Part shown: in pieces, positions 5,668 to 61,400 of the stretch
How the letters are laid out: the number at the start of each line of letters is the position of its first letter
Numbering within the stretch: position 1 is the first letter of the stretch
Assembly (NCBI RefSeq): GCF_000143415.4
Contig: NW_003314373.1
Span: 310,001-374,000 of the forward strand
DNA length: 64,000 nt
Reading direction: 5' to 3'
Source: Selaginella moellendorffii
Taxonomy: Eukaryota > Plantae > Lycopodiophyta
Position numbers and translations under genes: made by a program
Notes under the pieces: generated by a model
What the model was told of the DNA's origin: nothing
The model's input: only the letters and a program-made list of their open reading frames with translations
The model's database searches: none

Positions 5668-5867
5668 GTTAAGCTGACTTGTCCGCAGATGGAGGAGAAA
5701 CTATACATTTATGTTGTTCAACCAAAAGCTAAGTAGTCAAAAGAATGGTGTTGATTACGATTACCAAGGCATAGAAGAAGTTTCCTCTCAAAAGTGGAGA
5801 CGCATACCTTCGTCTTTTTCTTGAATGCAGCGAAAGCAATTTGCCAACAATGTGTGCTCCTTGCTTA

Positions 5868-33582: not shown

Positions 33583-34933
33583 TTAAGGGGAGAAGAAAAG
33601 CTTAATACCTTGCTTACCAGCAATCTCACGAGCATGGCTTTGCCTTTTCACTGCGTGGTTTTTGAGAATTTCTTTCTTGATGTCGGCCGAGAGCTTGTAG
33701 CTCACAAGGCGGATAATGGGAGCCCAGAAAGCCTCGAGCAGTGTCCTGGCGAAGCTCGCGGGAGCAAGCATCCCGCGAGTGAGCACCACCAGCGGGAAAA
33801 ACGACTTCGGTGCCACGAGAAACGAGCCTTTCTTGACAGCATCGAGCGTGACCTCCGCGAGCTTATCGGGTGACTGCATCGTCTTGGGATCATATCGATT
33901 GAGTATCTTGAGCATTGTTTCAAACTCGCCATCCTTGTCCACTGCAAAAAGTGTAGACTGTCACGGCTAGAAATCTTTCAAGTGTAAGTACCTTGATCTA
34001 TAAGAGCAGTGTCGACAAAGCCAGGACAGACGAGATTGACATTGATGTTATACGGCAAAAGCTCGAGATGGAGACACTCTGCTAATCCTCGTAGAGCATG
34101 CTTGGTTGCACTGTACACTGAGCTCCCGTACAAAAGGAACTGGAGAAAAGATCAACACAAGATATAAAGAGAGATTCCTATAGAGTGAAGTATACCAGTC
34201 CTGCTCCGGAGCTGACGATCACAATCGAGTGCTTCTTTTCGCTTGCGAGCGGCTTCATGAGTGGAAGCGCGGTGTGGACTGTATGAATCACTCCCATCAA
34301 GTTCGTCTGGACTTGACCTGCATGAACTTCCACCGGGACTTCGTCAAAGTATCCAGCCTTAGTGTACCCCGCGTTGCAAACCAGGACGTCGATTGGTTTC
34401 CACGAGTGAGCCTCGCTCACGGCGGAGGATATCGCGTTAAAATCGCCAACGTCGGCCACCTGATAAAAGTAGGATAACTCCAAGTAAGAACTTGGAAAAA
34501 TTCCAATCAAGTAAGAACGAATAAAGAAAGCAATCCAAAGGACGAACAGAAGAAAACAAGACGAAAGAAACAAGAAACAAAGAGCAAAACAGCAAAACAA
34601 AAAGCTATCAGAACGATGGACGATCAAGGCAGAAAGAGATGTATGTATACATACCAAAACTTTGATGCTATGGCTGTCGCAGTGCGCTTCACTCACAAGA
34701 GATTGAGCCGCCTTGTCGAGCTTGAGCTGGTTTCTGGCCGAGATGGTAACAAATGCCCCTTGGAGGAGGGCCTGCTTGGCAATGGCGAGCCCAATGCCGC
34801 TGGAAGCTCCTGTGATAAAGACGTGCTTGCCCGCCAGCGATGGGATAGCCAGTTTCTTCCTCCTGCCAAATGTAAGAAATGCAAACGCCACCGCCGCTGC
34901 CGCTGCCGCTCCCGCCGCCACTAGCCCCGCCAT
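33583..34933 (-). CDS. Short-chain dehydrogenase, 3-ketodihydrosphingosine reductase (TSC10/KDSR)-like, multi-exon
   Basis: N-terminal TM, KHVFITGASSGIGLAIA, IDVLVCNAG, YSATKHALRGLAECL (YxxxK) and VCPGFVDT. Confidence 0.85.
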
Positions 34934-35228
34934 TGCTCCCGCGCTAGGGCTCACATCAATTCGATTTGGGGTTTATCTTTACTTTACTGCTACACTCTTT
35001 TGATTTTGATAAAATTGATAATTCTTGATCTTTTCGTTAAATAAAAGAATACTAATTGCTATGGAAGTTGGCCCCTATTGTGTCTTGTTCTAGAACCCAG
35101 AATTATTGGGTTTGTCTTTTTTTTACTATAGCATTATTTTTAAAAGTTGTAATAACTAAGCATATCCTATTTTAATGCTATTTAAAAAGCCTTTATAAAG
35201 CAGATATAAACCATTTCATACTTAAAGA

Positions 35229-35681
35229 ATGACAGAGTTTGTTGTAGTTGTTTTCCTTTATTCATTTTTACTATATTTTCTTTTAGTTGGTGGGTATTTG
35301 CCAAGTGAAGCAACTCAAGATTGTATATCAATTGGTACACAAGATCCACCTTCTCCCCAAGCATATTGTCATGTAACAAATCTGTGTAAAGTTAGGTACT
35401 TTAATAATTTTTGGGAAAATGGAGAATATACTGCCTCGGGAGGAGGAATTTATGTCACAATTACTGTTAATAGAATGTATAGTAGGGCATCAATTCAACA
35501 AGATATAGAACAAGCTTTTAATTTTATATGGATTAGATGTATATCAGTGCTACGTCAAATGGGTGGTTTTGTTTATTTGAATGATGGAAGTTTATCAGTT
35601 AATGTTCAGATTGCACGAAGAAGAGAGTTATTAAAAGATCTTGATAGAATTAAAATAACAAAAGAATGTTCATCTTTATAA
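35229..35681 (+). CDS. Small secreted Cys-containing protein, family A, copy 1 (150 aa, AT-rich, intronless)
   Basis: Hydrophobic signal peptide, TATA-like tataaa upstream, frame intact in both duplicates, and a clear homologue at 62539-63368. Confidence 0.75.
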   Translation: MTEFVVVVFLYSFLLYFLLVGGYLPSEATQDCISIGTQDPPSPQAYCHVTNLCKVRYFNNFWENGEYTASGGGIYVTITVNRMYSRASIQQDIEQAFNFIWIRCISVLRQMGGFVYLNDGSLSVNVQIARRRELLKDLDRIKITKECSSL

Positions 35682-37460
35682 ATACCATTAATATTATAAA
35701 AAAATTATTATTTATAAATTTAAAATAAAAATTAATAAAAGAATATAATCCAGAGTGTAGTATTTAAAACATATAATATAACAGATATTAAAACTATGAT
35801 TATGATACATGACTTATGACATAAAATGAAACAAACACAATATTAAGTGGTAGTATAGTTTGAAAAACAAAATATTTCCAAAATATTTTTTGAAATAAGA
35901 TAGTTAGAGATATTATAATTAAATTCATTAGTTTCAAAATAATTTACTATAGTTTCCTAGCAGCAATATCTGGTCTTCTTGGGGTTAGTTTCCAAGAAAA
36001 ATAGTTAGAGAGGAGGAATTTAAAAAACTACTCTTAAATCTTATAAGTTTTGATATGATAGTTTGATGATGATTAAACTTATACATATAAGGTAATAATT
36101 TGTTGCACATTACATGCTTTTAAGAATGTCATTGAAGTTATAATTAAAACTTGAAAACACTTTTTTCACATCATCCTCAATTTCCCATATAACCTCGTCC
36201 ATAGAATAACCATTCCACCAAACCAACAACTCCCAAATTGTCTTGCAATTTGTTTCACCAACCTTTAAAAAAAAAATTTGGTTAGATAAACTTTATTAGT
36301 ATTAATCTTTGGGACCTAAAATTCACAACATCACTAGAGTACAAACATGTTTTAAACTTGCTTACATAAAATGTTGCATATGCAACAAAATTGTAGATAA
36401 TACAATATAATATTGTAGAGACAATTTAGCACTACCCTTTTAGATATTGTTATGCATTTAATAGTTTAAGGAAAATTTTGTCACCAACTTTATATTTCTC
36501 ATAATTATGATGTGCATTAGCCAATTTCTTGTTTCATTCTTGAACTTGTCTTATGTTCAACTTTGCCACTTTCATATCCTCAAAAAAATCACAAGTATGA
36601 GGCACTTAAACTAAAGATAAAATTAAACTCATGAGAGACTTGGGCTTATAGCTATACATGACCATGAATAGAAACACGTAAATATCCAATTGATGAGTGT
36701 TATTATGAGCAATCTAAAGTCAAGGCAAATGATTCTCCCATACTCTTAATATCGAGTCAAGTTTTCCATAAAAGATTTTAGCATATATTCCAATAGCTAG
36801 TTTATAATTTTTATTTGTCCATTTGATTATGGATGTTTGCCACTAATTATACTCAGCTTATCTCTAACTTCTCAAAAATCATTTGCCAAAACTTATCCTC
36901 TCCCTTTAACCTATTTGGAAAGGGGGCAATTATTTAATGTGAGATATTTTAATGGCTATTTAATCCTTATATATCTTCTATACTTCCAAGAATTCACAAC
37001 AACAATATATCTAAACTTCATCCCATGATCACATGTGTTACATTTAGTCAAAATGTTATGATGATATATTAAGGGCAGCTTTTAGGGGTCTGAATGTGGT
37101 TGTTATACTAAACCATACGTTGGTCTTATTCATAAAATTCTTATATAAATTTATAAAAAAATTATTATATGTCAAGAATTAATACTGATAAAATTAAAAT
37201 TAAAAAAACAAAAAAAAAGTACAAATACATGTTTAGTTTTCAATATATATCTTTATATATCTTTGTCTCATTCAATATTGGATGTTTTCTATAATTTATT
37301 GCTTCTTAACTATGAATTTATCAAAACTAAATACAAGTTTTAACTGTTTCAATTGTCCATACCATTGTTTTTGTAGAACTTTAAATGCTTTTATTTATAG
37401 CATCACTACAACATTTTTTAATTAATTTAAAATCTCATAATGCTTATATTACCTTCTTCT

Positions 37461-37865
37461 CTACTGAAATACTACATCATCATAACCATCATGTGAATAA
37501 TCACCATCAAATGCCCAATTTTCCCATCCATACCAACCTTTAGTTTTAAAATGACCATTACCAATAAATGATACACCATCAAATGGTACATTATTTATTA
37601 TTTTAGAGCACTTTTCTGCTGATAGTGTATCATAATCAAAGTAAGCAAATTCATTACCTTTTCTCCATAAAATAACATTTGCTTTATAAACATTACAATT
37701 TGCAAGAGCAAATTTCATATCTGGAGCCCAATTAAAATTATCTTTTCCTTCAATGATTGTTACTGTATAAAGAAGTTATTAATTAAGGATTAAGTTCAAA
37801 ATATTATACTTACACTGATATATATTAAATAAAAATAAAAGATAGAACCAGGTATTAAAACCCAT
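37461..37865 (-). CDS. Small secreted protein, family B (GWxNWAFxG motif), copy 1; ~117 aa with a 51-bp intron (37763-37813)
   Basis: Exon 1 MGFNTWFYLLFLFNIYQ, donor GTAAGT and acceptor TACAG splice in frame to LTIIEGKDNFNWAPDMKFAL...GHFKTKGWYGWENWAFDGDYSHDGYDDVVFQ. Confidence 0.78.
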
Positions 37866-38717
37866 GAATAAAAAATATAGTAATAATATATAACTAGCTT
37901 AGTAATTTCAAGATATTTAATGTAATTTTAGGTATAAATTTATCTTTAAATAATATAAAGCTGACAATAATTACTAATACTTCCAAAAAGAATTATTTTG
38001 TTCAATAATTATAAATTTCGTCTATACTTGACATGTCAAATTTGTATTTTTTGTCACTCTAAAACAATAGTAGGCATACTACATGCCTAAAATTGTGTTA
38101 ACATTTGTAATATGTTAGCAAAATACAAATGAATGATGTTTTTTGGTTTGCTTAAGCAACGCTATAGAGGAAGTGGGGTGGTACTGGATATACCTAGAAT
38201 ATTAAACACTTTCTAAACACTTTCTAGTATATTCTAGTATTCTACCATCTTGATATTAGATTAATCTTGTGTTTATAAATTATAAACATGTTTATAATTA
38301 TAAAATTCTGATCAATTGGATTAATAAATAGGAATAACACTACTATTAAGCAAACCAAGCATTACTGCATGCAACACATAAAAAATTATTATAATTTATT
38401 ACAATTCTGAGCTTATGTATTTTAAGATGTCTCAATAATTATTATATTATATAATTATAGTTTCGAATGGATTATCTGTGAGAAATAATATGTTACTCTT
38501 TTTTAATTTAAATTCCGCTCTAATATATGTTTACTAATAACTCTCACTCCCAAAATTAAAGTAATACATGATTTCTATACTACAATTCTCATTAGATGGC
38601 AAATAAACTTCATAATAATCAATGATGCTCACTTTGATGTTTTGTGTAGAGTCATATGGATATACCATAGTATATCCATATCTTCCCAAAGCAAAAACTC
38701 CTATCACTTAAGACTAA

Positions 38718-41012
38718 TCTAGTACTATAAGCCGAACTTTGTGGGCTGCCGGATCTGGCCAATCGGTGCCATCAGATGCAGGGTAAACTGGTAAATATCG
38801 GTTTCTTACTGCACATCCTTTTGAAATATTTTTGTGAGGTTTTGGGCCGGCCAGTGGGCATGCGGCACGGCCCCGGCTGGGGGAGGAGGTGTGAGCGACA
38901 CCCGTCTGCTTGCCTGGTAAAGCTCTCTTTTTTTCACCACGGCTCCTCCCAGCCACGGGGTTTCCAGGGGAAGCGGGAGAGGGGGCACTGCTGCCCAGCA
39001 GCGACAAGGACAGGGGATCACTCAGCGATACTGCATTCCCTTTTCCAATGGAAGGAGCCCAAATCGTCAGAGCAGGATTTTGGCGACGAGCAGCTGCAAA
39101 GGCGTGGCCGGAGGCATCGACAGGGAAGCAGTGGCTAGGGATTTTGCTGGAATGGATGGCGAGCAAGGGCGTGGCAGAGCCTGGGGGTGTGGATGTGAGG
39201 CACGGGAATTCCTATTTTTGATCCAGCAGAGGATTCGCTTTCATCACGTACAAAAGTGTTGACGACCCGAGGAAAGCCATAGATGATCCCAACAAGACAA
39301 CAGTGGTAAGCTTACCCAAACATACCATGGTTTTTGCTGACGAGTCTATTCTTCCAGGGAATGCACATAATTGTAAAGTGAGCGGCAGATGGTTGGCTCC
39401 AGAGCGCGTGACGAGCAAGTGCTACATCATTGGAGTGGCTTTCTCCGGTGGTGATCGTGAAGACTGAGGAGAGCTTTCTCCACGGCGCACTCAGCAGCGA
39501 TGGACTGGTGGATATGGCTGCCAAACTCGCCGAGGGAGTGAGCAGGATGGACAGACGCTTCATGGTGATGGAGTTTCATTGGCAATCCTCACAACTTCAT
39601 TACGTCTTGGGGTCCATGAAGCTGGAAAAGAAGAAGAGTGGAAATTCGCTACTCCATGCATACGATGTTAACAAGAGCTTGGAAGACTTCCAATGCTTGG
39701 AGATGATCACAAGAGAGTTTGGAAGTTTTCAGAAGATCACAAGAGCTTCGAAGTTTTCTTTTTGCTACTGGATGATTTGATCAACCAAGAACTCTCTATT
39801 TTTACAGTTCATGCAGAAAAGTTTTTGATCTTTGGGAAAGATTCCACTCGCTGAAAACGCACTGAAAAAGTCCTCATTATAATGTAACGTGGGAGGAATG
39901 ATGAGCTGGATCCAACAGCCAGTGAGGCTCCACGTTCCCGGCATTCATACCGGGGCTAGGGTTTTCTCCTCCTGGGCCTCCACGAAAAGGTTGCATCGAA
40001 AAGGTTAGTTTTTATGCCTGTCCATACCCTTTCTATCTGCCCTAATAATTGATCTCCATTTCCAAAAGAAGCTGTTGAAAATAATGTCGCACCTTCAACA
40101 TGTATTGAATGCTATTCGACACAGACATACACATTCCACATACAATGATAACGTTGAAAACACTAACCAGCACCAGCATACATATAGCTTTTACAACAGT
40201 AATATTCAAGAGGCTACACAGTATTGACATCAAACAAATCTTAATAATCAAACTGAACAGCAGTCAATTTCCAATTCCTATTTGCCCCCTTCACCTCAGA
40301 TTCACAGCACACTTGCTAGGAATTACTTATATATTGATACATCTGTTTTGACAATGAATATAGGTCCCTTATCATATATTTGTAAGTATTGTCATGCCTC
40401 ACACTTTGCTGATGCGAACAAGTCTATTTGTTGCCAGAGTGGACAAGTCTACCTGCCTCCAATACTTCTATTACCACCTTTTCTGTATTCTATGTATAAC
40501 TCACACAAACACTCTAATTTCAAGAGTAATATAAGACAATATAATAGTGCACTTGCTTTCACATCTATGGGAGCTAGCATTGATATTTTTACGGGTCATG
40601 GTCCATACTGCTATAGAATTCATGGACAAATCTATCACAAAATTATGCCACAACATCCTTCAATACATCAAAATCCAAGTTACAGTCAATTGTACATGCT
40701 AGACTCCAATGAGGCTACTGATATCAGAAAACAAAACCCTTTTAACATTATTTGTGATTATAATTTACTACTTCAACTAGATAAGATACTCCAACATATT
40801 AATCCATATGCACAAGCTTTTAGAATGATGTATGAATTGGAATGAGAAAATATTTCAAGAACTATTACTTCTGGTAGCAATTTACGTGGAGTATATATGC
40901 TCATTAAAAATGAAGGCACAGACCATCGTTGATATAATACTCCACAAACTAATGATGTTGCATTAGTTTTCCAAAGTGAAGGTGGTGTGCCACCTTTTGA
41001 CCGTGAAATATG
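38718..41012 (+). mobile_element. Truncated, internally shorter Helitron copy
   Basis: Begins A|TCTAGTACTATAAG like the element at 45274; carries the Rep N-terminus (CKYCHA..ICCQSGQV..NIRQYNSALAFTSMG..YRIHGQIYH); cut at the duplication junction. Confidence 0.82.
39222..39390 (+). pseudogene. Captured RRM fragment (UBP1-associated protein 2c-like) inside the Helitron copy
   Basis: SRGFAFITYKSVDDPRKAIDDPNKT, then a GT-AG intron, then GMHIIVK*A; RNP1 motif RGFAFITY. Confidence 0.65.
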
Positions 41013-41036
41013 GAGAATATAGAAGAATGAATAGTA

Positions 41037-41437
41037 AAGTAAGAACAAATAAAGAAAGCAATCCAACGGATGAACAGAAGAAAACAAGATGAAAGAAATA
41101 AGAAACAAACAGCAAAATAGCAAAACAAAAAGCTATTAGAACGATGGACTATCAAGATAGAAAGAGATATGTATACATGCCAAAACTTTGATGCTATGGC
41201 TGTCGCAGTGCGCTTCACTCACAAGAGATTGAGCCGCCTTGTCGAGCTTGAGCTGATTCCTGGCTGAGATGGTAACAAATGCCCCTTGGAGGGCCCAATG
41301 CTGCTGGAAGCTCCTGTGATAAAGATGTGCTTACCCGCCAGCGATGGGATAGCCAGTTTCTTCCTCCTGCCAAATGTAAGAAATGCAAATGCCACCGCCG
41401 CTACCGCTGCCGCTCCTGCTGCCACTAGCCCCGCCAT
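41037..41437 (-). pseudogene. Truncated copy of TSC10-like exon 1 and part of intron 1
   Basis: MAGLVAAGAAAVAAVAFAFLTFGRRKKLAIPSLAGKHIFITGASSSIG followed by a frameshifting deletion; downstream exons are absent. Confidence 0.9.
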
Positions 41438-41736
41438 TGCTACACCAATTCACTCTTTTCGATTTGGGGTCTATCTTTACTTTACTGCTACACTCTTTTG
41501 ATTTTGATAAAATTGATAATTCTTGATCTTTTCGTTAAATAAAAGAATACTGATTGCTATGGAAGTTGGCCCCAAGCATGCTCTATTGTGTCTTGTTCTA
41601 GAACCCAGAATTATTGGGTTTGTCTTTTTTTTACTATAGCATTATTTTTAAAAGTTGTAATAACTAAGCATATCCTATTTTAATGCTATTTCAAAAGCCT
41701 TTATAAAGCAGATATAAACCATTTCATACTTAGAGA

Positions 41737-42189
41737 ATGACAGAGTTTGTTGTAGTTGTTTTCCTTTGTTCATTTTTACTATATTTTTTTTTAGTTGGTG
41801 GGTATTTGCTAAGTGAAGCAACTCAAGATTGTATATCAATTGGTACACAAGATCCACCTTCTCCCCAAGCATATTGTCATGTAACAAATCTGTGTAAAGC
41901 TAGGTACTTTAATAATTTTTGGGAAAATGGAGAATATACTGCCTCAGGAGGAGGAATACATGTCACAATTACTGTTAATTCTATGTATAGTAGGGCATCA
42001 ATTCAACAAGATATAGAACAAGCTTTTAATTTCATATGGACTAGATGTATAGCAGTGCTACATCAGATGGGTGGTTTTGTTTATTTGAATGATGGAAGTT
42101 TATCAGTTAATGTTCAGATTGAACGAAGAAGAGAGTTATTAAAAGATTTTGATAAAATTAAAATAACAAAAGAATGTTCATCTTTATAA
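41737..42189 (+). CDS. Small secreted Cys-containing protein, family A, copy 2
   Basis: 150-aa intact ORF, 12 amino-acid differences from copy 1, mature-region cysteines retained. Confidence 0.75.
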   Translation: MTEFVVVVFLCSFLLYFFLVGGYLLSEATQDCISIGTQDPPSPQAYCHVTNLCKARYFNNFWENGEYTASGGGIHVTITVNSMYSRASIQQDIEQAFNFIWTRCIAVLHQMGGFVYLNDGSLSVNVQIERRRELLKDFDKIKITKECSSL

Positions 42190-44211
42190 ATACCATTAAT
42201 ACTATGAGAATATATCATTAGCTAGAAATTTAAAATAAAAATTAATAAAATCATATAATCCAGAGTGTAGTGTTTAAAATAAATAATAAAACATATATTA
42301 AAACTATGATAATGAAACATGACTTATGACATAAAATGAAAAAAATAAATATTAAGTGGTAGTATAGTTTTAAAAAAACATATTTCCAAAATATTTTTTA
42401 ATATAAGATAGTTAGAGATATTATAATTAAATTCATTAGTTTCATTGTGAGAGAAATAATTTACTATACTTTCCTAGCAGCAATATCTGGTCTTCTTTGG
42501 GTTAGTTTCCAACAAAAAAAGTTAGAGAGGAGGAATTTAAAAAACTACCCCTAAATCTCATAAGTTTTGATACGATAGTTTGATGATGATTAAACTTGTA
42601 CATATAAGATAATAATTTGTTGCACATTACATGCTTTTGAGAATGTCATTGAAGTCATACCTAAAACTTGAAAACGCTCTTTTTACATCATCCTCAATTT
42701 CCCATATAACTTCGTCCATAGAATAACCATTCCACCAAACTAACAACTCCCAAATTATCTTGCAATTTGTTTCACCAACCTTTAAACAAGAATATTAGTT
42801 AGATCAACTTTATTAACATCAATCTTTGGGACCTAAAATTCACATCACTAGAGTATAAATATGTTTCAAACTTCTTTACATAAAATGTTGCATATGCAAT
42901 AAAATTGAAGATAATACAATACAATATTGTGGACCTTTTAGATATTGTTATGCATTTAATAGTTTAAGGAAAATTTTGTCAAACCAACTTTATATTTCTG
43001 ATAATGATGATGTGCATTAGCCAATTTCTTGTTTCGTTCTTGAACTTGTCTTATGTTCAACTTTGCCACTTTCATATCCTCAAAAAAATCACCAGTATAA
43101 GGCACTCAAACTAAAGCTAAATTTAAACTCATGAGAGACTTAGGCTTATAGCTATATATGACCATGAATAGAAACATGTAAATATCCAATTGATGAGTGT
43201 TATTATGAGCAATCTAGAGTAAAGGCAAGTGATTCTCCCATACTCTTAATATCAAGTCAAGTTTTTTATAAAAGTCTTTAGCATATATTCCAATAGCTAG
43301 TGTATAATTTTTATTTGTTTATTTGATTATGGATGTTTGCCACTAGTTATACTCAATTTATCTCTAACTTTTCAAAAATCATTTGCCAAAACTTATCCTC
43401 TCCCTTTAACCTATCTGGAAAAGGGGTAATTATTTAATGTGAGAGTTTTTAATGGCTACTTAATCCCTATATATCTTCTAAACTTCCAAAAATCCACAAT
43501 GACAATATATCTAAATTTCATCCCATGATCACATGTGCTACATTTAGTCAAAATGTTTGTGATGATATATTAATATCTCACAAATATGGTCCACATGTCA
43601 AAGTTCAATAGAAGTGAGATATATATGATAATTAATGTTTTTTTCAAATTTTAAAAATTGTAAAATTTTAGTATTTTTTCCAATACAAATCAATCACTGC
43701 ACTATTGTGGTAAATTCCAAATGTCTACATTTTAAAAAAACTGGAAAAAACATCAATTGCCTGATGAGTCTAAGAAAGAGAAAAGGATTGATTGATTCAG
43801 CCAGACTTAAGAAAAAACAAATTGAGGGCAGCTTTTAGGGGTTTGAATGTGGTTGTTATACTAAACAATATGTTGGTAATATTCATAAAATTCTTATATA
43901 AATTTATAAACAAAATCATTATATGTCAAGAATTAATACTGATAAAATTACAAAAAAAAACCAAAAAAGTACAAATACATGTTTAGTTTTTAATATATAT
44001 CTTTATATATCTTTGTCTTATTCAATATTGGATGTTTTCTATAATTTATTGCTTCTTAACTATGAATTTATCAAAATTAAATACAAGTTTTAACTGTTTC
44101 AATTGTCCATACCATTGTTTTTTTAGAACTTTAAATGCTTTTATTTATAACATCACTACAACATTTTTAATTAATATAAAATCTCATATAATACTTATAT
44201 TATCTTCTTCT

Positions 44212-44616
44212 CTATTGAAATATTACATCATCATAAACATCATGTGAATAATGACCATCAAATGCCCAATTTTGCCATCCATACCAACCTGTAGTTTTAA
44301 AATGACCATTACCAATAAAAGATACACCATCAAATGGTACATTATTTATTATTTTAGAGCACTTTTCTGCTGATAGTGTATCATAATCAAAGTAAGCAAA
44401 TTCATTACCTTTTCTCCATAAAATAACATTTGCTTGATAAACATTACAATTTGCAAGAGCAAATTTCATATCTGGAGCCCAATTAAAATTATCTTTTCCT
44501 TCAATGATTGTTACTGTATAAAGAAGTTATTAATTAAGGATTAAGTTCAAAATGTTATACTTACACTGATATATATTAAATAAAACTAAAAGATAGAACC
44601 AGGTATTAAAACCCAT
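44212..44616 (-). CDS. Small secreted protein, family B, copy 2; intron 44514-44564
   Basis: Same exon structure and splice sites as copy 1; intact frame. Confidence 0.78.
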
Positions 44617-45801
44617 GAATAAAAAATATAGTAATAATATATAGCTAGCTTAGTAATTTCAAGATATTTAATGTAATTTTAAGTATAAATTTATCTTTAA
44701 ATAATATAAAGCTGACAATAATTACTAATACTTCCAAAAAGAATTATTTTGTTCAATAATTATAAATTTCCTCTATACTTGACACGTCAAATTTATATTT
44801 TTTGTCACTCTAAAACAATAGTAGGCATACTACATACCTAAAATTGTGTTAACATTTGTAATATGTTAGCAAAATGCAAATGAATGATGTTTTTTGGTTT
44901 GCTTAAGCAATGCTAAAGTGGGGTGGTAGTGGATATACCTAGAATATTCCTGGATATTTTAGGATATTCTACCACTTAAGTGTTATTCATTTAGATTAAT
45001 CTTGTATTTATAATTTAAATAATTGTATTTAGAAATAATATGTTACTCTTTTTTAATTTAAATTCTGCTCTGATATATGTTTACTAATAACTCTCACTCC
45101 CAAAATTAAAGTAATACATGATTTCTATACTACAATTCTCATTAGATGGCAAATAAACTTAATAATAATCAATGATGCTCACTTTGAGGTTTTGTGTAGA
45201 GTCATATGGATATACCATAGTCTATCCATATCCTCCCAAAGCAAAAACTATCATACTTATCACTTAAGACTAATCTAGTACTATAAGGAGCAAACGCCAA
45301 ACTTTGTGGGCTGCCGGATCCAGCCAATCGGGGCCGTCCAATGGGGGGGTAACTGTTAAGGGGTTATTTCTTTAACCACGTGTTAGCAAATAATCACGCT
45401 GATGTTTGCTCCTGGCCAATGGGAGGCAGCCAAGCCATGTGTGGCGGGAGAGGAAGGCCCGACGACGCATGTCACATGCAATATGTTGACTGTTGTTGTC
45501 TGTCAAGCGAATTAGTTTTGTTTTGTATGTTTTTCTAGGGTTTATGAGACAGCGAAAGAGCCCCTGCCGCTGCTGCCAATTCACGATCCAAATCGGAGGC
45601 GCTGTGTCAACGCTGGTGTCTTTGCTCCTGAGAACCATCGCAAGTTGCTATTTGTCATTCTTCTTTCATAACTTTGGTATTCTCATACACGATGTGTCTC
45701 TGCTTTTGGCTCTTCATCGCGTTACCGTGAGGAGTTCCATCAAATCAAGGTATTTGTGGTGCGTAGAATTTGTATGATCTTCATTCTTACTCCACTGTCA
45801 G

Positions 45802-45922
45802 GAAATGGGACGAGGCAATTTAAGCTCTTAAACGCTTTGAAGCACATTCACTCGGCACAGCCTTGCTCACCTGGACGTGAAGCCTGACAACATCTACATC
45901 TGCAATTGCATCTACAAGATTC
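45802..45922 (+). pseudogene. Captured WEE1-like kinase fragment
   Basis: EMGRGN.. joined to ALKHIHS..SLAHLDVKPDNIYICNCIYKI; HLDVKPDNIY is the plant WEE1 catalytic-loop signature. Confidence 0.7.
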
Positions 45923-47725
45923 GCTCTGAGACCGTGCTGCCGAGGTAGAGGCTGCGGAGGCTATGACAACTGCAAAGTTATTACTACTGCTCGATGAGCA
46001 AGACAGGAAGCTAAACAGCACCGCTTCCACGACCAACCTCAATGGAGTTCATGTTAGCTTGGACTCCCCCGAGGTTCCTGGAACTCCACGAATCATGGAG
46101 CATAACAACAGTAGCGGCAGCCATGGGAATGGGATGAATGAAGACGTGCTAACACTGGAAGGTTGGATTTTTTTTGTTTGGATCTTCTCTGGTACTAAGC
46201 TTTCGAAATGATCGAGTAGATATGCAGCAGTTCCAGTCGAGCAATCCCTTTGGATTCATCATGGACGTGCTGGAGGGCGAAGGTGGTGATGAGAGTGAAG
46301 CTCTTCATCCACTTCCCAATGATGCTTACGTCACAGTCATATGATAGAACTTGATTACTCACTTTGGAAACTTCTAGCAGCACCAATGGGAATGGACACA
46401 ACCTTCCCGAGAGTCCATTCGCCAGCCTGCATCACAGCGAGAGCTCTTCCAACTTGCACATACCGAAAGAACACCACGATCAACCTCCATCTCTGTCAAT
46501 CGAATTTTTCAACCTTGCACCGCCACACAACAACATCATTTGCTGCATTTGTCTCAGTAAGTCCCACTCTCGCAAATTGTTGTAACAATCTAAGCTTACT
46601 TCGTTTCTTCCTGTTCTTTGTCCAGAGCACTGCGTAGAGCCATCCAAACTGGACCGCAGCCATACCTTTTGCGTGCAGTGTATCCTGAAGGTAAAAATCT
46701 CTCTTTTCTCTCTTGACTTTAAACTTTGCTCATTGTTCTCTTCATTTTCTCCAGGTTATCAAAGGATGAATGTCCAATCTGTTGACAACACATAGACAGC
46801 CAAGTATACAAAATCTTACAAAACAGGGATTTACAGTCCTAGCTCTCCCCGACAGCACTAAGTCACAGAATCCCGCAACACATATGGTAGGAAGAACAGC
46901 AACAAAACAGCGAAAAGAAGAAAATTTACCAACACCACAACACAACAAAACAATGGGAGGCGGCCAAACCGGAGAGGAAGGAGCAGCAATGCATGTCGCA
47001 TGCAAAGTGTTGATGGTGACTACACCTGCTGTCTCTCCTGTCGAGTGAAAATGCCCAATGACATGGCAAAAATTAAGCAAGGCTTTGGACCAACGGCTGT
47101 GATTAACCCAAACTTAATCAATTGCTTCATTCAGGATCTCTCTCTCCGATAGCAGCGGCAGCTAGCAATTCTAATAAGGGGTCTCAAAACCATGTAGATT
47201 AAAATTACCAGCCATCGCCAGATGATGTTTCTTTGCAGCAGCAACCAGTTCTAAGTGATTTAGAGATGGGTGGAGAGAGCAGTGAACTAGGTTTGTGTTT
47301 ATCTTGATAAGGCAAAATTTAATCACTTTTCTTTCCAGGATCTAAGCGCCTTACACATCTTAGTGCTTCAAGTACTTTGTCTATTCCAATACAATGCTTT
47401 ACAGCTTGAGGAATAGGTGTACAAGAAAATTTCAAACAACCGTTACATTTTCAAAGTCCCTTTGCTAGTTTAGCAGGTATTGGCACTTGGCTTTTTTGCT
47501 TTTTAAACCTTATTTATGGCCAGATCCAGGCGTTCAGACACAGACTTCCAGCCAAGTGCCCCGTGCGATTGTAGGAGGTACTGCTCAATTTTAGAATGCT
47601 TTTTTTTAGTTATGGGTTAATAATGGGATTTTTTAGCTAAACGCAAGTTATATAGCATTCTAGACCCTGACATATGGAATCTAATTGCTTCCTCTGAGGA
47701 AACACAATATACATGTGTTCATATT

Positions 47726-48970
47726 GTGGATCTACAACTTCATTTAGGCGGTGAGCTGCTTCTTATATATGTATTATCTCGATACGGTAGTTATGATTTC
47801 CAACATGAGGTCCACTCAACAAGAATGGCATCAACATCAAGGTTCCTTAACATCGATTTCACTGACAGCTACGGCATGCACCTTGCGACAGCTTTGATGG
47901 CAACCAATGCTACTAATAAATATAGCCACCTTTTCAAGTTAGGTCACTGGTTGTGTATTCAACACTACAAGGTTAGAGCTAAGAATCCGAAATATCATTT
48001 GGGGCTCCATTGTTTCTTAGTAGATATTTCTACGGCCACACATGTTTGAGCATGGCCAGAGAAGGCTCCTCTAGTGCTTGACTTTGTTAGGCCATCAAAC
48101 ATTGTTCCACTGAATCAGTTTGCAAGGGATGCTTCTGCTTATACTTCTGCAACGGTTGCTGCGGCAATCATTAGTGTGGACCAAATGCCTAACACTATAA
48201 ACATCATATTCATTGCTAATGATCTTGAAGCTGAAAACACTTATAAGGTATTTGTAATATTATGATTGAATTTTTTGGGTGAACTTCAAAAACAAGTGCA
48301 TGTGCTAGGTGATATGGACCATGTCTATCATGAGCTCAAATCGTCATGGTTTGCTAGGGACATGCCAAGTCATATTTTCTACAATCTCCGAGGAACTAAA
48401 GATAAAAATGTGTTCAGGATTGCACCCTCGACTATTGTCTTGAAAATTCCTGATGATATGCTTTGGGACCACATATAGAAACAACTGCACTTTATTTCAT
48501 TCATATATGGAAAAAACTTCTTTGGGGTATGTCTTTCTTGATCTTTACCAGTGGTTCATGATGCATATTTTGTCAATAGGTGCATGGCCACTTTATCCCT
48601 GAAAATCCTCGAGTGATCTCTATTTGTTGCGGCTGCCATGTTTGCAAAAAGTTCAAGGTCAAGAAACAAACACGAGATATTGGTTGGTGTCACCATTGCA
48701 AGAATGAACAACTGTTTTTTTAAATTTTGCAGGTCCATGGCAAATTCTATCCAGATAATGGCCACCCCCAAGACGTTTGCATGGAGGACACTTATATAGA
48801 CCAAACATATGGTCTTACTCCTGGCCAGTTTTTAAGAATGTTCACTTTTGCTTGGATGTCTGGGGCAATCAAGCTTTTGGAGACAAAGAAGCCACCAACA
48901 GGCCACTTCTTATTCTAGACTAGTGCCGATGAGAGCTTGCCAAAAGTTATTGCATTCAAGGCTGATTAAA
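47726..48970 (+). pseudogene. Degenerate RPA70-like OB-fold (ssDNA-binding) gene of the Helitron
   Basis: FLNIDFTDSYG..ATAL....NKYSHLFKLGHWLCIQHYKVRAKNPKY....F.VDI..AT.V follows the OB-fold pattern of Helitron-borne RPA genes; interrupted by stops. Confidence 0.5.
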
Positions 48971-49227
48971 GTACTATACACTTTCATTTCATGTTCCATA
49001 GTGTGTTTTTCTTTTTTGTTTGTATAATATACTGTCTATAAGCTTGCTACATAGTTGTATTTGAGATCAATTGTATTATTACAACTTCAAAGTCTCTTGC
49101 AAGAATCTCAGCCAAAGCAGGTATGCCAATCATCTTAGCGACTTCTTTAAAATGTAACAACACTGCCTCCACCACATATTTAACACTATTTCATATTTCT
49201 CTTGCAGAAAAGAAAAATGTGATAAGA

Positions 49228-49403
49228 ACCTTCCTGTTTGTTTGAGCATGTCCATCATCTTGGTCTGGAAAACTGGATCCACAACCTCCACGCTGACACC
49301 AGTGCCACTCTGCGGCATCGCAAAAACATCGATGACTCGGACAGTGTACTCATCCATAAAATCACCTAGCATGAGACCCATAACTTCCATTGGCACACCA
49401 GCT
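49228..49403 (-). pseudogene. RPN11: Captured exon of 26S proteasome subunit RPN11 (JAMM/MPN+), with the start of the following intron
   Basis: [58 protein letters not shown] is near-canonical RPN11. Confidence 0.92.
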
Positions 49404-51464
49404 TAGATGCGGGGTAAACCGGTAAATATCGGTTTCTTACCACACGTCCTTTTGAAATATTTTTGCGAGGTTTTGGGCCGGCCAGTGGGCACGTGGCACG
49501 GCCCCGGCTGGGGGAGGAGGGTGTGAGTGACACCCGTTTGCTTGCCTGGTAAAGCTCTCTTTTTTTCACCACAGCTCCTCCCAGCCACGGGGTTTCCAGG
49601 GGAAGCGGGAGAGGGGGCACTGCTGCCCAGCAGCGACAAGGACAGGGGATCGCTCGGTGATGCTGCATTCCCTTTTCCAGCAGAAGGAGCCCAAATCGCC
49701 TGAGTAGGATTTTGGCGACGAGCAGCTGCAATGGTGTGGCCGGAGGCATCGACAGGGAAGTAGCGGCCAGGGATTTTGCTGGAATGGATGGCGAGCAAGG
49801 GCGTGGCAGAGCCTGGAGGTGTGGAGGTGAGGCACGGGAATTCCTATTTTTGATCCAGCAGGGGATTCGCTTTGATCCATCACTCACCCACACAATAGAC
49901 ACAACAGTGGTGCGATGGGACAGGGAGCACAAACTCACACAGTAAGCAAAGCATTATCGCTCTGCTTGATAACACGTGCTTTGTTTTATTCGCTGAACAG
50001 GTCCCCGGAAAGCTTGGCAGCCGCTTTGCTCAATTTTTGGATGAGAGCCGAGCGAGCAAGCCATGTTCAAGACGATGGAGAGCCAATCATGCCCTGCAAG
50101 CTTTGACTGCTTACTTCCGTCTTGCAACCATCTTCGTTCCATACAAGGAAAGGAGAAAAAATGAGAAGAAGCATTCTCTCGGTTGGGGGACTGGGAGGAA
50201 AATAATTCACACGACCAAGTAAGCAGTAATGTGAGATAGATCCCTGTGGCCGAATGGAATTGGAGCTTAGTGTTCCTATTCACAACGAATTGGTGGCCAC
50301 ATATTCCCATGGTAGTTTCTCTCTTCCTCTTCTTTGTTCGTATTTTTAATAGTTTTGTTTCGTTTCAGGTTTTGGAGTGACTCTTCCAAGCAAGCAAGCA
50401 AGTGATGGACTGGTGGATATGGCTGCCAAACTCGCCGAGGGAACGAGCAGGATGGACAGACGCTTCATGGTGATGGAGATTCGTTGGCAATCCTCACGGC
50501 TTCGTTACGTCTTGGGGTCTGTGAGGCTGGAAAAGAAGAAGAGTGGAAATCCGCTACTCCATGCATATGATGTTGACAAGAGCTTGGAAGATTTCCAATG
50601 CTTGGAGATGATCACAAGAGAGTTTGGAAATTTTCAGAAGATCACAAGAGCTTCGAAGTTTTATTTTTGCTACTGGATGATTTTATCAACCAAGAACTCT
50701 CTGTTTTTACAGTTTGAGCAGCAAAGTTTTTGATCTTTGGGAAAGATTCCACTCACTGAAAACACACTGAAAAAGTCCTCATTATAATGTAACGTGGGAA
50801 GAATGATGAGCTGGATCCAACGGCCAGTGAGGCTCCACGTTCCCCCGGGGCTATGGTTTTCTCCTCCTGGGCCGCCACACGACGGGATGATCCTCCATTC
50901 GAGCTCGCAGATCTGAGGTGCCGTGCTGCTGCACGAATTCCCGGGCTGATCAATTGGAGCATGCACCTCGCAGATCCCAATTTGGTGGAGGAAACATGGC
51001 ACTCGCAGTGAGGTAGCAAAAATGTAAGTCTTGCGAGAAGACACTGTATCAGGTAACACACATCAATCTGCTCCTTTTTGGCATGCATCGAAAAGGTTAG
51101 TTTTTATGTCTGTCCATACCCCTCAGTAAATATCTTTTGCTTTCTATCTGCCCTAATAATTGATCTCCATTTCCAAAAGAAGCTGTTGAAAACAATGTCG
51201 CACCTTCGACATGTACTGAATGCTATTCGACACAAACATACACATTCCACATACAATAATAACGTTGAAAACACTAACCAGCACCAGCAGACATATAACT
51301 TTTACAACAGTAATATTCAAGAGGCTACACAGTATTGACATCAAACAAATCTTAATAATCAAACTGAACAGCAGTCAATTTCCAATTCCTATTTGCCCCC
51401 TTCACCTCAGATTTGCAGCACACTTGCTAGCAATTACCTATATAATGATACATCTGTTTTGACA

Positions 51465-54400
51465 ATGAATATAGGTCCTTTATCATATATTTGTAAATAT
51501 TGTCATGCCTCACACTTTGCCGATGAGAACAAGTCTATTTGTTGCCAGAGTGGACAGGTCTACCTGCCTCCAATACTTCCATTACCACCTTTTCTGTATT
51601 TTGTATATAACTCACACAAACACTTTAATTTCAAGAGTAATATAAGACAATATAATAGTGCACTTGCTTTCGCGTCTATGGGAGCTAGTATTGATACTTT
51701 TACAGGTCATGGTCCATACTGCTATAGAATTTATGGACAAATCTATCATAAAATTATGCCACAACATCCTTCAATACATCAAAATCCAAGTTACAGTCAA
51801 TTGTACATGCTAGACTCCAATGAGGCTACTGATATCAGAAAACAAAACCCTTTTAACATTAACTGTGATTATAATTTACTGCTTCAACTAGATAAGATAC
51901 TCCAACATATTAATCCATATGCACAAGCTTTTAGAATGATGTATGAATTGGAACGAGAAAATATTTCAAGAACTATTACTTCTGGTAGCAATTTACGTGG
52001 AGTATATATGCTCATTAAAAATGAAGGCACAGACCATCGTTGATATAATACTCCACAAACTAATGATGTTGCAATAGTTTTCCAAAATGAAGATGGTGTG
52101 CCACCTTTTGACCGTGAAATATGCATTCATCCAAAATCTTCAGAACCACAACATATATTTATTTTAAGTGTTAATTGTGATCCTATGGTTTATCCATTGC
52201 TTTTTCCATATGGAGATAGAGCCTGGCATGACAAGCTTTCTTCTAACAAGCATGTAACACTCCTTCAATATTATGCCTATCGTTTGTCCAAAAGATATTC
52301 AACATTATCAACCTCTACAGTTACATATGACCAAATTTTACATGCTGGAAAACTCACTCAACAATATATTGTGGATGCCTATGTTAAAAGTGAAAGCAAC
52401 AATTTACAATACTATAGATCTAATCAAAAAAGTATGAGAGTTGATTTTTATATAGATTTGATGGATTATGTTGCTGGCAAAGCTGCTGATGCAAATGCTC
52501 GACCAGGAAAAATATTTTACCTTCTACTTTTACAGGAAGCCCAAGAGTTATGCAACAAAATTACCAAGATGCTATGGCAATTGTAACAAAATATGCAAAA
52601 CCTGATATTTTCATAACTTTCACTTGCAACCCTAAATGGCCTGAGATATTACAGAATCTGCACCCGAAGGACCTGCTAGGGTTTTTAACATGAAGTTAAA
52701 ATATTTTCTTCATGATATTACACAAAATAATATCTTTGGAAGATGTATTGCATTTATATATGTCATTGAATTCCAAAAAAGAGGTTTGCCACATTGTCAT
52801 TTCCTAAGTATATTAGACAATGAAAGTAAAATTAAAGACCTTGTCACTATTAACCAATATGTATCTGCTCAATTATCTGACCCTTTATCAGAGAATAAAC
52901 TATTTGAAATAATCACATCACATATGATACATGGTCCATATGGATTACTAAATCCTCAAAGTCTATGTATGGAAAACAAAAAATGCTCCAAAAACTATCC
53001 CAAAAACTTCAATGACAGGACTATATATTGTGTGCATGGGTACCCAGAATATTTTAGGCTAAACAAGCCACACCTTTCTTAAAAATGATGTTCCAATTGA
53101 TAATAGATGGATTGTCCCATATAATAAATAGTTATGTAAAAAATACAAAGCCCATATAAATGTAGAAATATGTGCATCAATTAAAAGTATTAAGTATCTT
53201 TTTCAATATGTTTATAAAGGATATGATTGTGCAACCATTGAAATCCAAACAGCTACTCAGTCTGAAAACGTATTAAATTGGGATGAAATCACGAATTTTA
53301 TAAATACCCGATACATTTCAGTACTAGAAGCTATTTGGAGGATATTTAAATTTAAAATGCATGGACGCTCACACCCTATAATATGTTTACCCGTACATCT
53401 TCCTGACTTCCAAAATGTGTATTTTACAGAAGGCTTGGAGCACAATGCCTTGCAAAGAGCAGCACGTAATGGAACAATGCTAACAAAATAGTTTAAACTC
53501 AATATTCATGATCTAAATGCAAGACAATATACCTACATTGAAATATCTTTACATTATGTTTTCAATAAATCTACTAATGTATGGCAATGTCGAAAAAAGA
53601 AAAAGGTTATTCCTCGACTATACTCAATATCTCCTCTAAATACTGAGTTGTACCACTTACGTATTATTCTTCTTCATAAAAGAGGTGTGACATCCTTCGA
53701 CAATATTAAAATAGTTAATAATGTAACTTATCAAAACTTTTAACAATTTGCTATTGCTATGGGTCTTCTTGATGATGATAACAAGTGGTATAACTGTTTA
53801 CAAAAAGCATACAATTTTCAAATGCTTACACAATTGTGTCAACTCTTTACTTTCATATATATTTTTTACAATCCACAAGACCCATCATATCTTTGGGATG
53901 TTTTTAAGGGTTAGCTCTCTGAAGATTTTGGTAGAACAAATATTGTATGCCAATATAAACTTGCTTTAATAGACATTAACTCAAGAATGAAAATACATGG
54001 TAAAACAAACCAATTATACAACTTACCTATCCCAATCCGAAATATCTCTATTCAATCAATACCAAATTGCAACCATTCATGTACCAAAATTTACCATCAT
54101 ATTAGAAACTGGAATGCTGAACAATTAATTATATTCAATGAAATTATTAACATTATCAAGTGCCCAACCTATACCAACCATTTTATTTTTATTGATAGCC
54201 CTGGCGGTACTAGTAAAATATATTTATTAAATACAATGGTAAAATATTTTGAGTTTTACAATAAAAAAAGTGGTTTTTATGGCATGGACAAGCATTGCAA
54301 GCACACTACTACACAATGGACAAACGTCCCATACAACCTTTATGTTACCAGTTCCAATTAATAATACATCCATTTCTAATTTAACACCTAATAACAGTGC

Positions 54401-55410
54401 CGGTAGATCTATGAAAGCAATACAAGTGTTTATTTGGGATGAAATTAGTATAGTTCATACACTTGCCTTTTCAGTTGTCGACTGCTGCCTACGAGACTTG
54501 AAACAGAACAATTCTCCATTTGGTGGCATTATTATTGTTATAAGTGGTGACTTCTGTCAAACATTATCAATTGTCCCACACAGTTATTAAACACAAATTG
54601 TTTCCACATCTGTAAGAATGAATAGTCTATAGAATTTATTTAGAAAGTTCCAATTGCAAATAAATATGCGGCTTGGCCCCAAGTTCCCAGACTGGGCAGA
54701 ATAGCTATTGAAAGTCGGTGATGGAAATAATTACACACAAAACCCTATTTTACCACTTGATTCTATCCTTTTTCCTTCAGAACTAATTAAAAGTACCTCT
54801 ATTACTGATTTTGTATTCCCATGTATCGAAGACATTTCAAATGTTCAAATTGCAGCAAATAAAGCCATTTTAACACCTCTCAATGATGATATATTTCCAA
54901 TTAACAACAACATTATCTCTCAATTACTAAGTCCACCTCAAATTTATACTAGCATTGACTCTGTTGATGTTGAACACCCGAGAAATATGCCTCCAACAAT
55001 TGGATTATGCAATGGAACTCAACTAATGGTCAAAAGAACTTCACCTAAAGTTTTGGACTGTGAAATAATTATAAGTGAATTTAAAGGTACTAGAACTTTT
55101 ATCCCACGCATTAACTTAACACCTTCTAATTCAGATGTTCCATTCCATATGTTTCGAAAACAATTTCCTCTTCATCTTGGATACTGCTTAACAATTTCAA
55201 AATGCAAAGGTTAAACATTTGATCGTATAGGCATCTACTTACCTCAGTCAGTCTTTACTCATGGGCAGCTCTATATTGCACTCTCAAGATGCATATCACC
55301 ACAACAACTTGCAATTCGAGTTGACACAACTCATATACAAGGCCACTTAATTCCATTCAATTCATCAACATTCATCATCAATACTGTATACAAAAAAACT
55401 TTATATTAAC
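51465..55410 (+). pseudogene. Helitron Rep/PIF1-helicase (RepHel), disrupted
   Basis: FITFTCNPKWPEI, VIEFQKRGLPHCH (HUH), KYLFQYVYKG, FIDSPGGTSK, IWDEIS, PFGG..VISGDFCQ, GLCNGT, RKQFPL and VFTHGQLYIALSR; many stops and frameshifts. Confidence 0.95.
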
Positions 55411-58405: not shown

Positions 58406-61400
58406 TTAAGAAGGTGTTACTTCGAAGTACACAGCGTATTTTTCATCACTGTAGGAAGAGAGTGGAAACATCAGGTAAGTGTCGTTGTCACCATAAGCCT
58501 CAAAACTCATGGGATGATACGAGGCTCTTCCCGCGGTCACACCGAAACTGGCTGCCATCTTGTTGAATCTTTCGCACTCAAGAGTGATATCCCTTCCTTG
58601 AGCAACCAAGAAGCAACCTTGGATGCCGCTGGCCTCGAAAGAAATTTCTCCCGGATGACCAGAGAGCGCTGAACGTAGCTTAAACACCGAAGAACTCGAG
58701 GGGAAACCCGAGCTCTTGCCGTTAGTAAGCCTGACACCATCTTCAATCCCAAAATGAGTGACAAACCTCCCCGGCCGATTCAAGAGCTCGAGAGATACCT
58801 CCCGATCGAGCAGCAAGCTTGTAACATCCTTGACTTGAAACTTCTCTATCGTCTTCAGAGATGGTAGTAACTTAAGTCTGAAAGTTGCGAGAGGAGCTTC
58901 TTCGGAGCCGTGTTGAGGCTTGCTGATCATGGACAACGCTCCATCGCTGCTTGCTGCTAGATACTGGAGCTTTCCTTGTTGGAGTTGCGTGAAGCTAAAC
59001 AGATTACTGTCACGCACCGGTTTTATCCATCTCGAAGGAGTCGATACGTTGACGGATCCAAGTTTATAATTGCCATCGCTCATCCCAGCCAGGAGGTAAG
59101 GACCGTAGTATATCGCGTAGAGCGATGAGTACTTTGAGCGCTCATCTAGATCATTTTCAAAAGCGAGTGTAAAACTTATATCGAGAGCTTCCATTCGTTA
59201 CCTTGGATCTTTTCGAGCCTTAGCATGGCCGAGAAGGTAAAGGATAATTTATCTCCGGTCTTCCATTCTCGTGACACATCGAAGAACGTTCCTGTGAGAA
59301 TCGAGCTTTAGAGAATCCAATCCATGCTATATGCCAGGAAACGAAAGAACCCGTACCTGGTGTTAAGTTTTGAAGCTCAAGTCCGTTGAGAAGGCACCTG
59401 GAGGATTGAGCCCAGTAAGGCACCCGAACGGACAACTTTGCTTCGCTAGTTTTTCCAAGCACAAGCTTCTGCAAGTTTCGCTTCAACAAAACTGGCCAGA
59501 GGAGAAAATTTTAGCCTCACCTGTGTGAAATTGAATGTGACCGTCATCACAGGATCAGTCGAGGTCATATGATAAACCCGTTGATCTACGCTGAGACCAG
59601 CGGCAGTCCACAAAACTTTAGACGACAAATATTGGATCACGTATAGCTGTGGAGTGTCTTGTACTTCATCTGTGAAGTAAATGGAGTCTCCAAGCTTGGA
59701 AAAAGACTCGATTGCTACAAACATGTGCAAGTTTTGGACATAAGAAGGAGAAGAGAAGAACATACCGGTTCCATAGCAGCACCAGAAAGACGAAAATGGT
59801 GTTCCCCAGCCATGATAGGACGTCGCTTTGGAGCTTCCAGGGGCAAGAGGAAGCATGTAGATCATAACTCCAGGCTCTTTTCCTCGTTGAATTGTGAGAA
59901 CCCCGTTGATTAACGCTCTCTCGTAGAAATCAGCGTAATGCATTTGCTTTGTCCAGCGGAAGAGATTTCGTGCCACCTAAAGCAGTCAAACAGCATGTAA
60001 CGATAAAACTAAAAAAGAGAAAAGACTTCCTAATAGAAACCTTGAGCATGTTGTAAGTTGTACAAGATTCCTCGTTTTCGGTTCCCAGAGTATCTCCAAG
60101 TCTACTCGGATCGGACCTGAATTATAAACAGGCCCAGATCTCAGATTGAGCTTACTTGATAAATCCTTACCAGAATTCGCCGGCAGACGTCCCCCCTGTA
60201 GCATATGTATGGGAGGAGCTCACGATTTTCATGAAATATTCGCTTAAATCCTGAAAAAAAACTCGCTAACTCTCATGCTTACAACTGGATTAAAAGCTGG
60301 ACCTTATAAAGCTTATCACCCACAACTTCGTACCGCAATTGAGCACCAATCACAATGGGTATGTGAGTGTTGGCATGAAAGCCCGATATGCTATCAGCCT
60401 GGAAAAATTACCAGAAAAAAAAGAAGGCAAGCAAAAATGTAAGAAAGAAAACAGAAGAAAACAGAAGAATTACCCGAACAGCCAACAATCCTAGGAAACA
60501 TGGTTTATCAAACAAGTGTGCCAACTTTAAGTGTTTCGCATCTCCCTGAGAATGGTTTTTTCGTCAGGATCAACCAAGCCAAGCTGTGAAGAGCTTACCG
60601 TAATTTGATAGACACGATACAAGACATCGTTCATCCCGCCAGTCTCCTCGTTTAGTGATTGCCAGTGTCTCTCGATGCTATACTTCTCAATGACCCTCTC
60701 AACGCGGCTCCCAAAGTAATCAGTCATGCCTAACAGCATCTCGAATGCAAGACTGTTCGCGGCGTACGTATACTGATCCAAAAGTCCTGCCATAATCTTT
60801 CAAGGGAACAAAAAAAACACAGGACTACGTTGGAAGTTCAAGGAAAAAAAAAACAAGAAAGCTCTATACCTTGTGAATCGTGTAGTATGGTGCCCAAACA
60901 GACTCCAGAGCTTCGAAACGATCAAACAAGCTGGTTGGAAAAGCAGACAAGTATCCAGTTCCAATCTTTGCCTGGCACTCGGCCAAAGCTGCTACAACAG
61001 CATTCATGTTTTCGTAGATGGTGAGGTTGTGAGTGGAGGCCCAAGTCATTGCACTCGCACTGAGATAATGCCCTGCAAATGGAAACTTAAGATCACCGAG
61101 GAAAGAATCGTTTCACACATACCCACGAAATGGCCCCGGAGCTCTGAGGTCGGAAGCTCCCATCCTCCATAGGCCGATCCCGAGGCGTTCAACCCAGCAG
61201 TGGTTCTAAAACTATACACCAAGTTGTCCACATCGAGCATCAGCAAGTAGTCGAGATTGGTTTGCTGCGCAATTGCCTGCCACGAATCCGGCAAAAGCCT
61301 CACGTCGTGCAGTGAAACAGCCTCAAGAAAGGAATTGTTTCGCTGCTGCTGGAGGACTCTCCTCCTGGAGAATTCTAGCGAACCTGTGGCGGTGGTGGTG

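Follow-up and report, generated by a model that had tools for sequence, protein, structure and literature searches.

Two tandem genes of Selaginella moellendorffii belong to a family of predicted small secreted proteins of lycophytes and ferns

The window analyzed here is a 64-kb stretch of scaffold GL377677.1 (assembly GCA_000143415.2) of the lycophyte Selaginella moellendorffii, and begins at position 310001 of the record. It contains two tandem copies of a gene that are probably intact and so far unannotated, and each is predicted to encode a secreted protein of 117 residues. With these copies, the reference annotation of Selaginella gains two gene models that it lacked. They define a family of small, putatively secreted proteins that is common to lycophytes and ferns and was not found in seed plants within the reach of our searches. 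The overall reading that we favor as the probable one is that of intact tandem genes of a lycophyte and fern family, the products of which would be secreted, bind a ligand through an aromatic loop, and act in the apoplast, most likely in defense. The family opens the question of what seed-free plants secrete into the apoplast.

Gene models of the two copies

Each copy contains an 85-residue open reading frame (ORF) on the minus strand, at 37461..37718 in copy 1 and 44212..44469 in copy 2. Upstream of the ATG of this ORF, the frame of either copy continues without a stop to an acceptor CAG, and comprises 99 codons. A short first exon starts at the ATGs at 37865 (copy 1) and 44616 (copy 2). It is formed by 17 hydrophobic, aromatic-rich codons and one additional base, and its N-terminal residues are MGFNTWFYLL. 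The introns are 51 nucleotides long, lie in phase 1, have the form GTAAGT...CAG, and differ by one base between the copies. Upon intron retention, the frame of exon 1 meets a TAA eleven codons into the intron, and splicing is therefore needed to produce the protein. The predicted spliced product of both copies has 17 + 1 + 99 = 117 residues. The exons and introns of the two copies are as follows:

37814..37865, minus strand: copy 1 exon 1, hydrophobic N-terminus of the predicted signal peptide, 17 codons and 1 base
37763..37813, minus strand: copy 1 intron, 51 nucleotides, phase 1, GTAAGT...CAG, in-frame TAA if retained
37461..37762, minus strand: copy 1 exon 2, 2 bases, 99 codons, and stop; mature domain with the GWYGWENWAF motif
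44565..44616, minus strand: copy 2 exon 1, one replacement relative to copy 1 (F to V)
44514..44564, minus strand: copy 2 intron, 51 nucleotides, both splice sites intact, one substitution relative to copy 1
44212..44513, minus strand: copy 2 exon 2, protein 94% identical to that of copy 1, no insertions or deletions

An initial annotation of the window had proposed that a 51-bp intron joins a hydrophobic signal-peptide exon to the 85-residue ORF in both copies, giving a product of about 117 residues, and the gene models with their intact splice sites confirm this. The duplication of the gene, also claimed there, was recovered by self-comparison of the window, which places both copies inside a 6.5-kb tandem segmental duplication; there are only two gene copies within the 64 kb. 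The motif G-x-F-x3-G-x2-G-W-x-N-W-A-F-x-G is found in both. The sequence searches and the structure model of the window protein described below used exon 2, and exon 1 was read by eye. The signal peptide likely extends a few residues into exon 2, where I-I-E-G would provide a better cleavage site than the poor Q-L.

Relatives in lycophytes and ferns

An exhaustive phmmer search of 1.84 billion cluster representatives identified two true matches, from S. moellendorffii and from the fern Ceratopteris richardii. The S. moellendorffii protein (XP_024534696.1, 111 residues) is 43% identical over residues 8-92 (E 5.8e-13), and the Ceratopteris protein matched with an E of 1.4e-4. Two repeat proteins in the same list are low-complexity matches and were rejected. 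Two profile searches, in which the E-values among family members were 1e-22 to 1e-52, added proteins of Adiantum nelumboides and A. capillus-veneris and an 84-residue protein encoded on a metagenome contig from JGI. The identical 84-residue protein is also encoded by a contig of a Logan sequencing run, and a pattern scan of metagenome contigs gained one further contig. The three environmental sequences are all 71-78% identical to fern proteins. The JGI contig carries another ORF, which we read as plant-transposon-like.

The F, T, G, W, G, N, W, and G positions of the motif are invariant in all nine family members, and the motif is therefore a true family signature and not a chance resemblance. 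The signature reported in the initial annotation is thus present in both window copies and throughout the family, while the label "microbial-style" attached to it was reproduced by none of the searches. Of the 21 columns without variation among the other seven members, 18 are retained in both window copies, whereas identity at the variable columns is about 30%. The retention of these 18 columns indicates that the window lineage has been under long-term constraint. In the phylogenetic tree, the four Selaginella rows are separated from the five fern rows with support of 99/97. The branch of the window lineage has a length of 1.82, similar to that of the annotated Selaginella paralogue (1.48).

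Exon 2 and its homologues have no sequence match in Pfam, NCBIfam, or the PDB, and a literature search found no paper on the family. The member from A. capillus-veneris is labelled "S-protein homolog" in UniRef; the label was rejected, as the plant self-incompatibility S1 family (PF05938) gave no match at E up to 10. Judged from their sequences, the proteins constitute an unnamed family of small, putatively secreted proteins, of which all confirmed relatives within the databases searched are lycophyte or fern. The patchy distribution without seed-plant members that had been anticipated is borne out, with relatives restricted to lycophytes, ferns, and fern-like environmental contigs. Since the host is a lycophyte, the absence of the family from seed plants is no anomaly of this genome.

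Comparison with the Selaginella paralogue and fern homologues

The paralogue, LOC112347667 (XP_024534696.1; allele XP_024544383.1), is annotated as an "uncharacterized protein" of 111 residues and shares 43% identity with the window protein over 85 residues. It encodes a signal peptide, as the window genes putatively do, and shares with them two cysteines, the G-W-Y-G-x-x-N-W motif, and a predicted fold of a helix and eight strands. Its gene also has a phase-1 intron directly after the signal peptide, followed by the domain exon. The intron is 43 nucleotides long (44 in the other haplotype), compared with 51 in the window genes, and is positioned 4 codons before a conserved tryptophan instead of 11, in a stretch that is not conserved. 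Unlike the window genes, LOC112347667 has a normal base composition (GC content 0.48; GC content at third codon positions, GC3, 0.60), is annotated, and is a single-copy gene between ordinary genes. On each of the two haplotype scaffolds, GL377588.1 and GL377623.1, it is flanked by an LRR/beta-CASP gene model on one side and a bVLRF1 gene on the other.

The fern homologues are KP509_15G045600 of Ceratopteris richardii, GOP47_0001366 of Adiantum capillus-veneris, and L7F22_006840 of A. nelumboides, the gene model of which is intronless. They share with the window proteins the C-terminal domain, including the aromatic motif among its 18 invariant columns, and they are likewise predicted to be secreted precursors. 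Classical signal peptides are present in the paralogue as well as in the fern homologues. However, the fern proteins are longer, at 153-168 residues, and contain a variable spacer of 40-60 residues followed by RR[IL]LQ immediately before the domain. The two cysteines shared by the lycophyte members, located at the helix end and in strand 3, respectively, could form a disulfide. They are absent from the fern proteins, which have a different single cysteine instead.

The organization of the fern precursors raises the alternative that the family is not defensive and instead provides an extracellular signalling ligand, cleaved from its precursor in the secretory pathway and released to bind a receptor. 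All three fern precursors consist of a signal peptide, the variable spacer, and the R-R-[IL]-L-Q sequence just before the domain, a sequence that we take to resemble the site-1-protease/subtilase motif of RALF and pectin methylesterase precursors. The Selaginella proteins, including both window copies, nevertheless lack a spacer or dibasic site between the signal peptide and the domain, and the part that would be released is a folded domain of 95 residues, not a short peptide. To our knowledge, no receptor link exists for the family. We regard a role as a processed ligand as improbable.

Origin of the domain and base composition of the locus

The initial annotation had named similar proteins from Actinobacteria, Firmicutes, fungi, and nematodes, and had considered the gene to be horizontally acquired or patchily retained. 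The phmmer search, the two profile searches, the metagenome scan, and a plasmid tblastn search detected no homologue in these groups or in any other microbe, with the reservation that a single-sequence search may miss motif-only relatives below about 38 bits, very remote microbial ones included. The pattern scan of JGI metagenomes produced 262 pattern matches, and the sole confirmed one is of the fern type. In tblastn against 72,556 plasmids, exon 2 had no match and the fern domain had one, with E = 7. The survey of taxonomic distribution by homology thus ended without microbial hits, the outcome that the initial annotation itself had set against its proposal, and the claimed microbial kinship is not upheld.

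Several candidates for microbial relatives were rejected. The single match in a scan of bacterial and archaeal genomes was a chance nine-residue word inside a 753-residue ORF, which we read as a topoisomerase/gyrase A subunit. The leads from a protein atlas (DUF7888, a viral cluster, and LPD28) have scores of 0.77-0.87, a range that serves for leads only, and none was confirmed. The lead to DUF7888 (PF25411), a family of small fungal proteins, had an atlas score of 0.87 to a cluster from Ascomycota, but the Pfam model matched none of eight family members at E up to 10. The DUF7888 and "S-protein homolog" families resemble the window family in comprising small secreted proteins, yet neither had a Pfam match to the eight members scanned.

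The window genes have a GC content of 0.29 and a GC3 of 0.12, compared with 0.48 and 0.60 in the paralogue. They are embedded in AT-rich islands (35.0-38.7 kb and 41.5-45.3 kb, GC content 0.26) located between GC-rich PPR genes. The ratio of observed to expected CpG dinucleotides in the island is 0.12-0.19, with TpG and CpA in excess, compared with 0.84-1.04 in the neighboring PPR region and 0.32 in the region of a Helitron transposon. CpG depletion of this kind is left by cytosine methylation and deamination over a long time. It extends over the whole island and explains the AT-richness of the genes without a foreign origin. A dispersed repeat, about 335 bp long, occurs at 5864-6168 and again at 36561-36895 and 43061-43395 with 79-81% identity, and the island is therefore at least partly repeat DNA. 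It is also possible that the island forms the 5' arm of the neighboring Helitron, in which case the gene would have been captured.

We consider it very unlikely that seed-free plants acquired the domain by horizontal transfer from bacteria or fungi. Such a transfer would fit the patchy distribution among lycophytes and ferns only, the extremely low GC3 relative to the paralogue, and the weak atlas lead to the Ascomycota DUF7888 cluster, with which 162 of 256 features are shared. However, the low GC content is common to the whole CpG-depleted island, the genes contain spliceosomal introns, and the tree follows the split between lycophytes and ferns. Beyond this, the Pfam model of DUF7888 recognizes no family member, none of the searches described above recovered a microbial relative, and every confirmed relative is lycophyte or fern. 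This removes a claim of horizontal transfer that was based solely on a motif. Instead, we propose, as the simplest reading, that the gene would be an old vascular-plant gene that is shared by lycophytes and ferns, was not kept by seed plants, and involved no microbial transfer.

Predicted structure

AlphaFold2 models of the window exon 2 and of the paralogue were built from the small family alignment. The predicted local distance difference test (pLDDT) scores are 85.2 for the window exon 2 and 74.6 for the paralogue, and two of the five models were confident in each run. Both predictions agree on a layout in which a single N-terminal helix precedes eight short strands, and in both models the loop that connects strands 5 and 6 contains the invariant G-W-Y-G-W-x-N stretch.

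Foldseek searches of the PDB and a viral library found no convincing match to the models, and comparisons with CBM3 and cohesin modules gave E-values of at least 0.4 and template modeling (TM) scores of at most 0.3. VIA-align comparison of the two models with 48,161 chains resulted in best Z-scores of 3.6 and 4.6, with none reaching 5. Near the top for both models were the MmoB/DmpM effectors of bacterial multicomponent monooxygenases (T4moD, 3dhh_E; DmpM, 2inp_L), which are small α+β domains and aligned over 63-70 residues. These alignments have Z-scores of 3.5-4.6 (3.5 in a second look), root-mean-square deviations of 2.6-3.5 Å, and sequence identities of 11-15%, and remain below the level that the tool calls meaningful. 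The effectors are cytoplasmic bacterial proteins without a signal peptide. Kinship with them was rejected, as the best Z-score fell short of 6 and there was no Pfam match. The predicted fold appears to be unmatched among solved structures, which does not prove it to be new. With no Pfam entry, no paper, and no convincing match to a solved structure, the family is a cheap target for structure determination.

Possible function and state of the genes

If, as we infer, the genes are currently expressed, the short signal-peptide exon would be spliced to the domain exon to give the 117-residue protein, which would be secreted to the apoplast. The mature domain of about 95 residues would consist of the N-terminal helix packed on the eight short strands. 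We hypothesize that a glycan or some other extracellular ligand binds to the invariant loop rich in tryptophan and tyrosine (G-W-Y-G-W-x-N-W), because glycan- or membrane-binding sites often look like such an invariant, exposed cluster of these residues in a loop. The apoplastic role of the protein would most likely be in defense, as tandem duplication and surface turnover are typical of defense-type secreted proteins. The assignment of an apoplastic binding protein with a defense role is a best guess of low probability. Similarly, we only speculate that the family represents an undescribed secreted class of seed-free vascular plants with an unmatched fold, in which the Trp/Tyr loop would bind a microbial or cell-wall ligand and the surface would change fast in the manner of immune proteins.

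Several observations weigh against the reading of intact genes for secreted binding proteins. What is proposed on binding and defense is guesswork based on the aromatic loop and the pattern of evolution, and neither Foldseek nor VIA-align matched the models to a lectin or carbohydrate-binding fold. Secretion, as had been claimed initially, is suggested by the hydrophobic N-terminus and by the signal peptides of the relatives; the reading of exon 1 shows, however, that this N-terminus has no basic n-region. Neither the NCBI nor the JGI annotation contains either copy. Exon 2 also has no match in the word index of a collection of 5.8 billion protein clusters, and thus neither copy is annotated in that collection. 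The CpG depletion resembles that of long-methylated repeat DNA and lies beside a Helitron, so the locus is possibly silenced. Between the two window copies there are 7 replacement and 2 silent changes; the domain exons of the two paralogue alleles are distinguished by 6 replacement changes and 1 silent one. Judged from these sequence differences, the recent evolution of the genes is near-neutral, indistinguishable from neutral.

These points bear on the alternative that the copies are silenced, decaying duplicates, which would be true family members by descent but no longer functional, situated in methylated repeat-rich DNA. Such decay would account for the lack of annotation and of an entry in the protein collection, the replacement-to-silent rate ratio of about 0.7-0.8 between the copies, the CpG ratio of 0.12-0.19 next to a Helitron, and the weak n-region of the signal peptide. 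On the other side, the ATG, splice sites, open frame, position of the stop, and 18 of the 21 family-invariant residues are intact in both copies. The 405-bp gene accumulated 10 substitutions and no insertions or deletions between the copies, whereas the 731 bp of immediate flank have 26 substitutions and six gap events. Moreover, the paralogue, which looks expressed, is equally near-neutral in its recent changes, and such change may be characteristic of the whole family. We consider silencing and decay possible, but doubtful.

The recent changes of the window copies and the paralogue alleles combined amount to 13 replacement and 3 silent ones, and none of the 12 replacements in the mature domain affects an invariant column. 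Such a pattern is consistent with a conserved core and a surface that changes rapidly; so few changes also fit relaxed constraint.

Tandem duplication and neighboring genes

The segmental duplication consists of two units:

34509..41012, strand not assigned: duplication unit A, left edge in a short-chain dehydrogenase gene, right edge in a Helitron-related ORF
41037..52123, strand not assigned: duplication unit B, 91-96% identical to unit A, with a later insertion of about 4 kb at 45336-49404 and smaller insertions

The left breakpoint is inside the short-chain dehydrogenase gene, which spans 34178-34954 on the minus strand, compared with 41219-41437 on the minus strand in unit B. Unit B therefore has only a 5' fragment of the gene, with the start of the nucleotide-binding motif. 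The right breakpoint is in Helitron-related sequence that runs on past unit B into ORFs with Helitron_like_N and Pif1 helicase domains. Remains of the Helitron are located on the plus strand at 40282-40845, 51393-52586, and 54708-55214, and the copy in unit A is cut at the duplication junction. The continuation of the Helitron from unit B has Pfam matches to Helitron_like_N (E 1e-8) and the Pif1 2B domain. The ORF at 40282-40845 has no Pfam match of its own, and is taken for Helitron N-terminal sequence since the continuation of its unit B copy matches Helitron_like_N.

Both duplication units also contain a 150-residue ORF, at 35229-35681 and 41737-42189 on the plus strand, which is convergent with the secreted-protein gene. 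The two ORFs are intact and 92% identical without gaps, have a hydrophobic N-terminus, and a GC content of 0.31. They have no sequence match in Pfam or the PDB, and an exact look-up in the protein collection returned no record for them.

The other genes of the window include several PPR genes and one DUF568 gene. Two of the PPR proteins encoded in the window exactly match gene products of scaffold GL377677.1, which confirms S. moellendorffii as the host. The PPR ORF at 31710 likewise had no record in an exact look-up in the protein collection. In the GC-rich part, the adjacent ORFs at 12789-15410 and 15407-16666 on the minus strand, of 873 and 419 residues, respectively, have no Pfam match with an E-value of 0.001 or less. 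A 262-residue ORF at 58406-59194 on the minus strand matches the AbfB (arabinofuranosidase B, ricin-like) domain only weakly, below the threshold.

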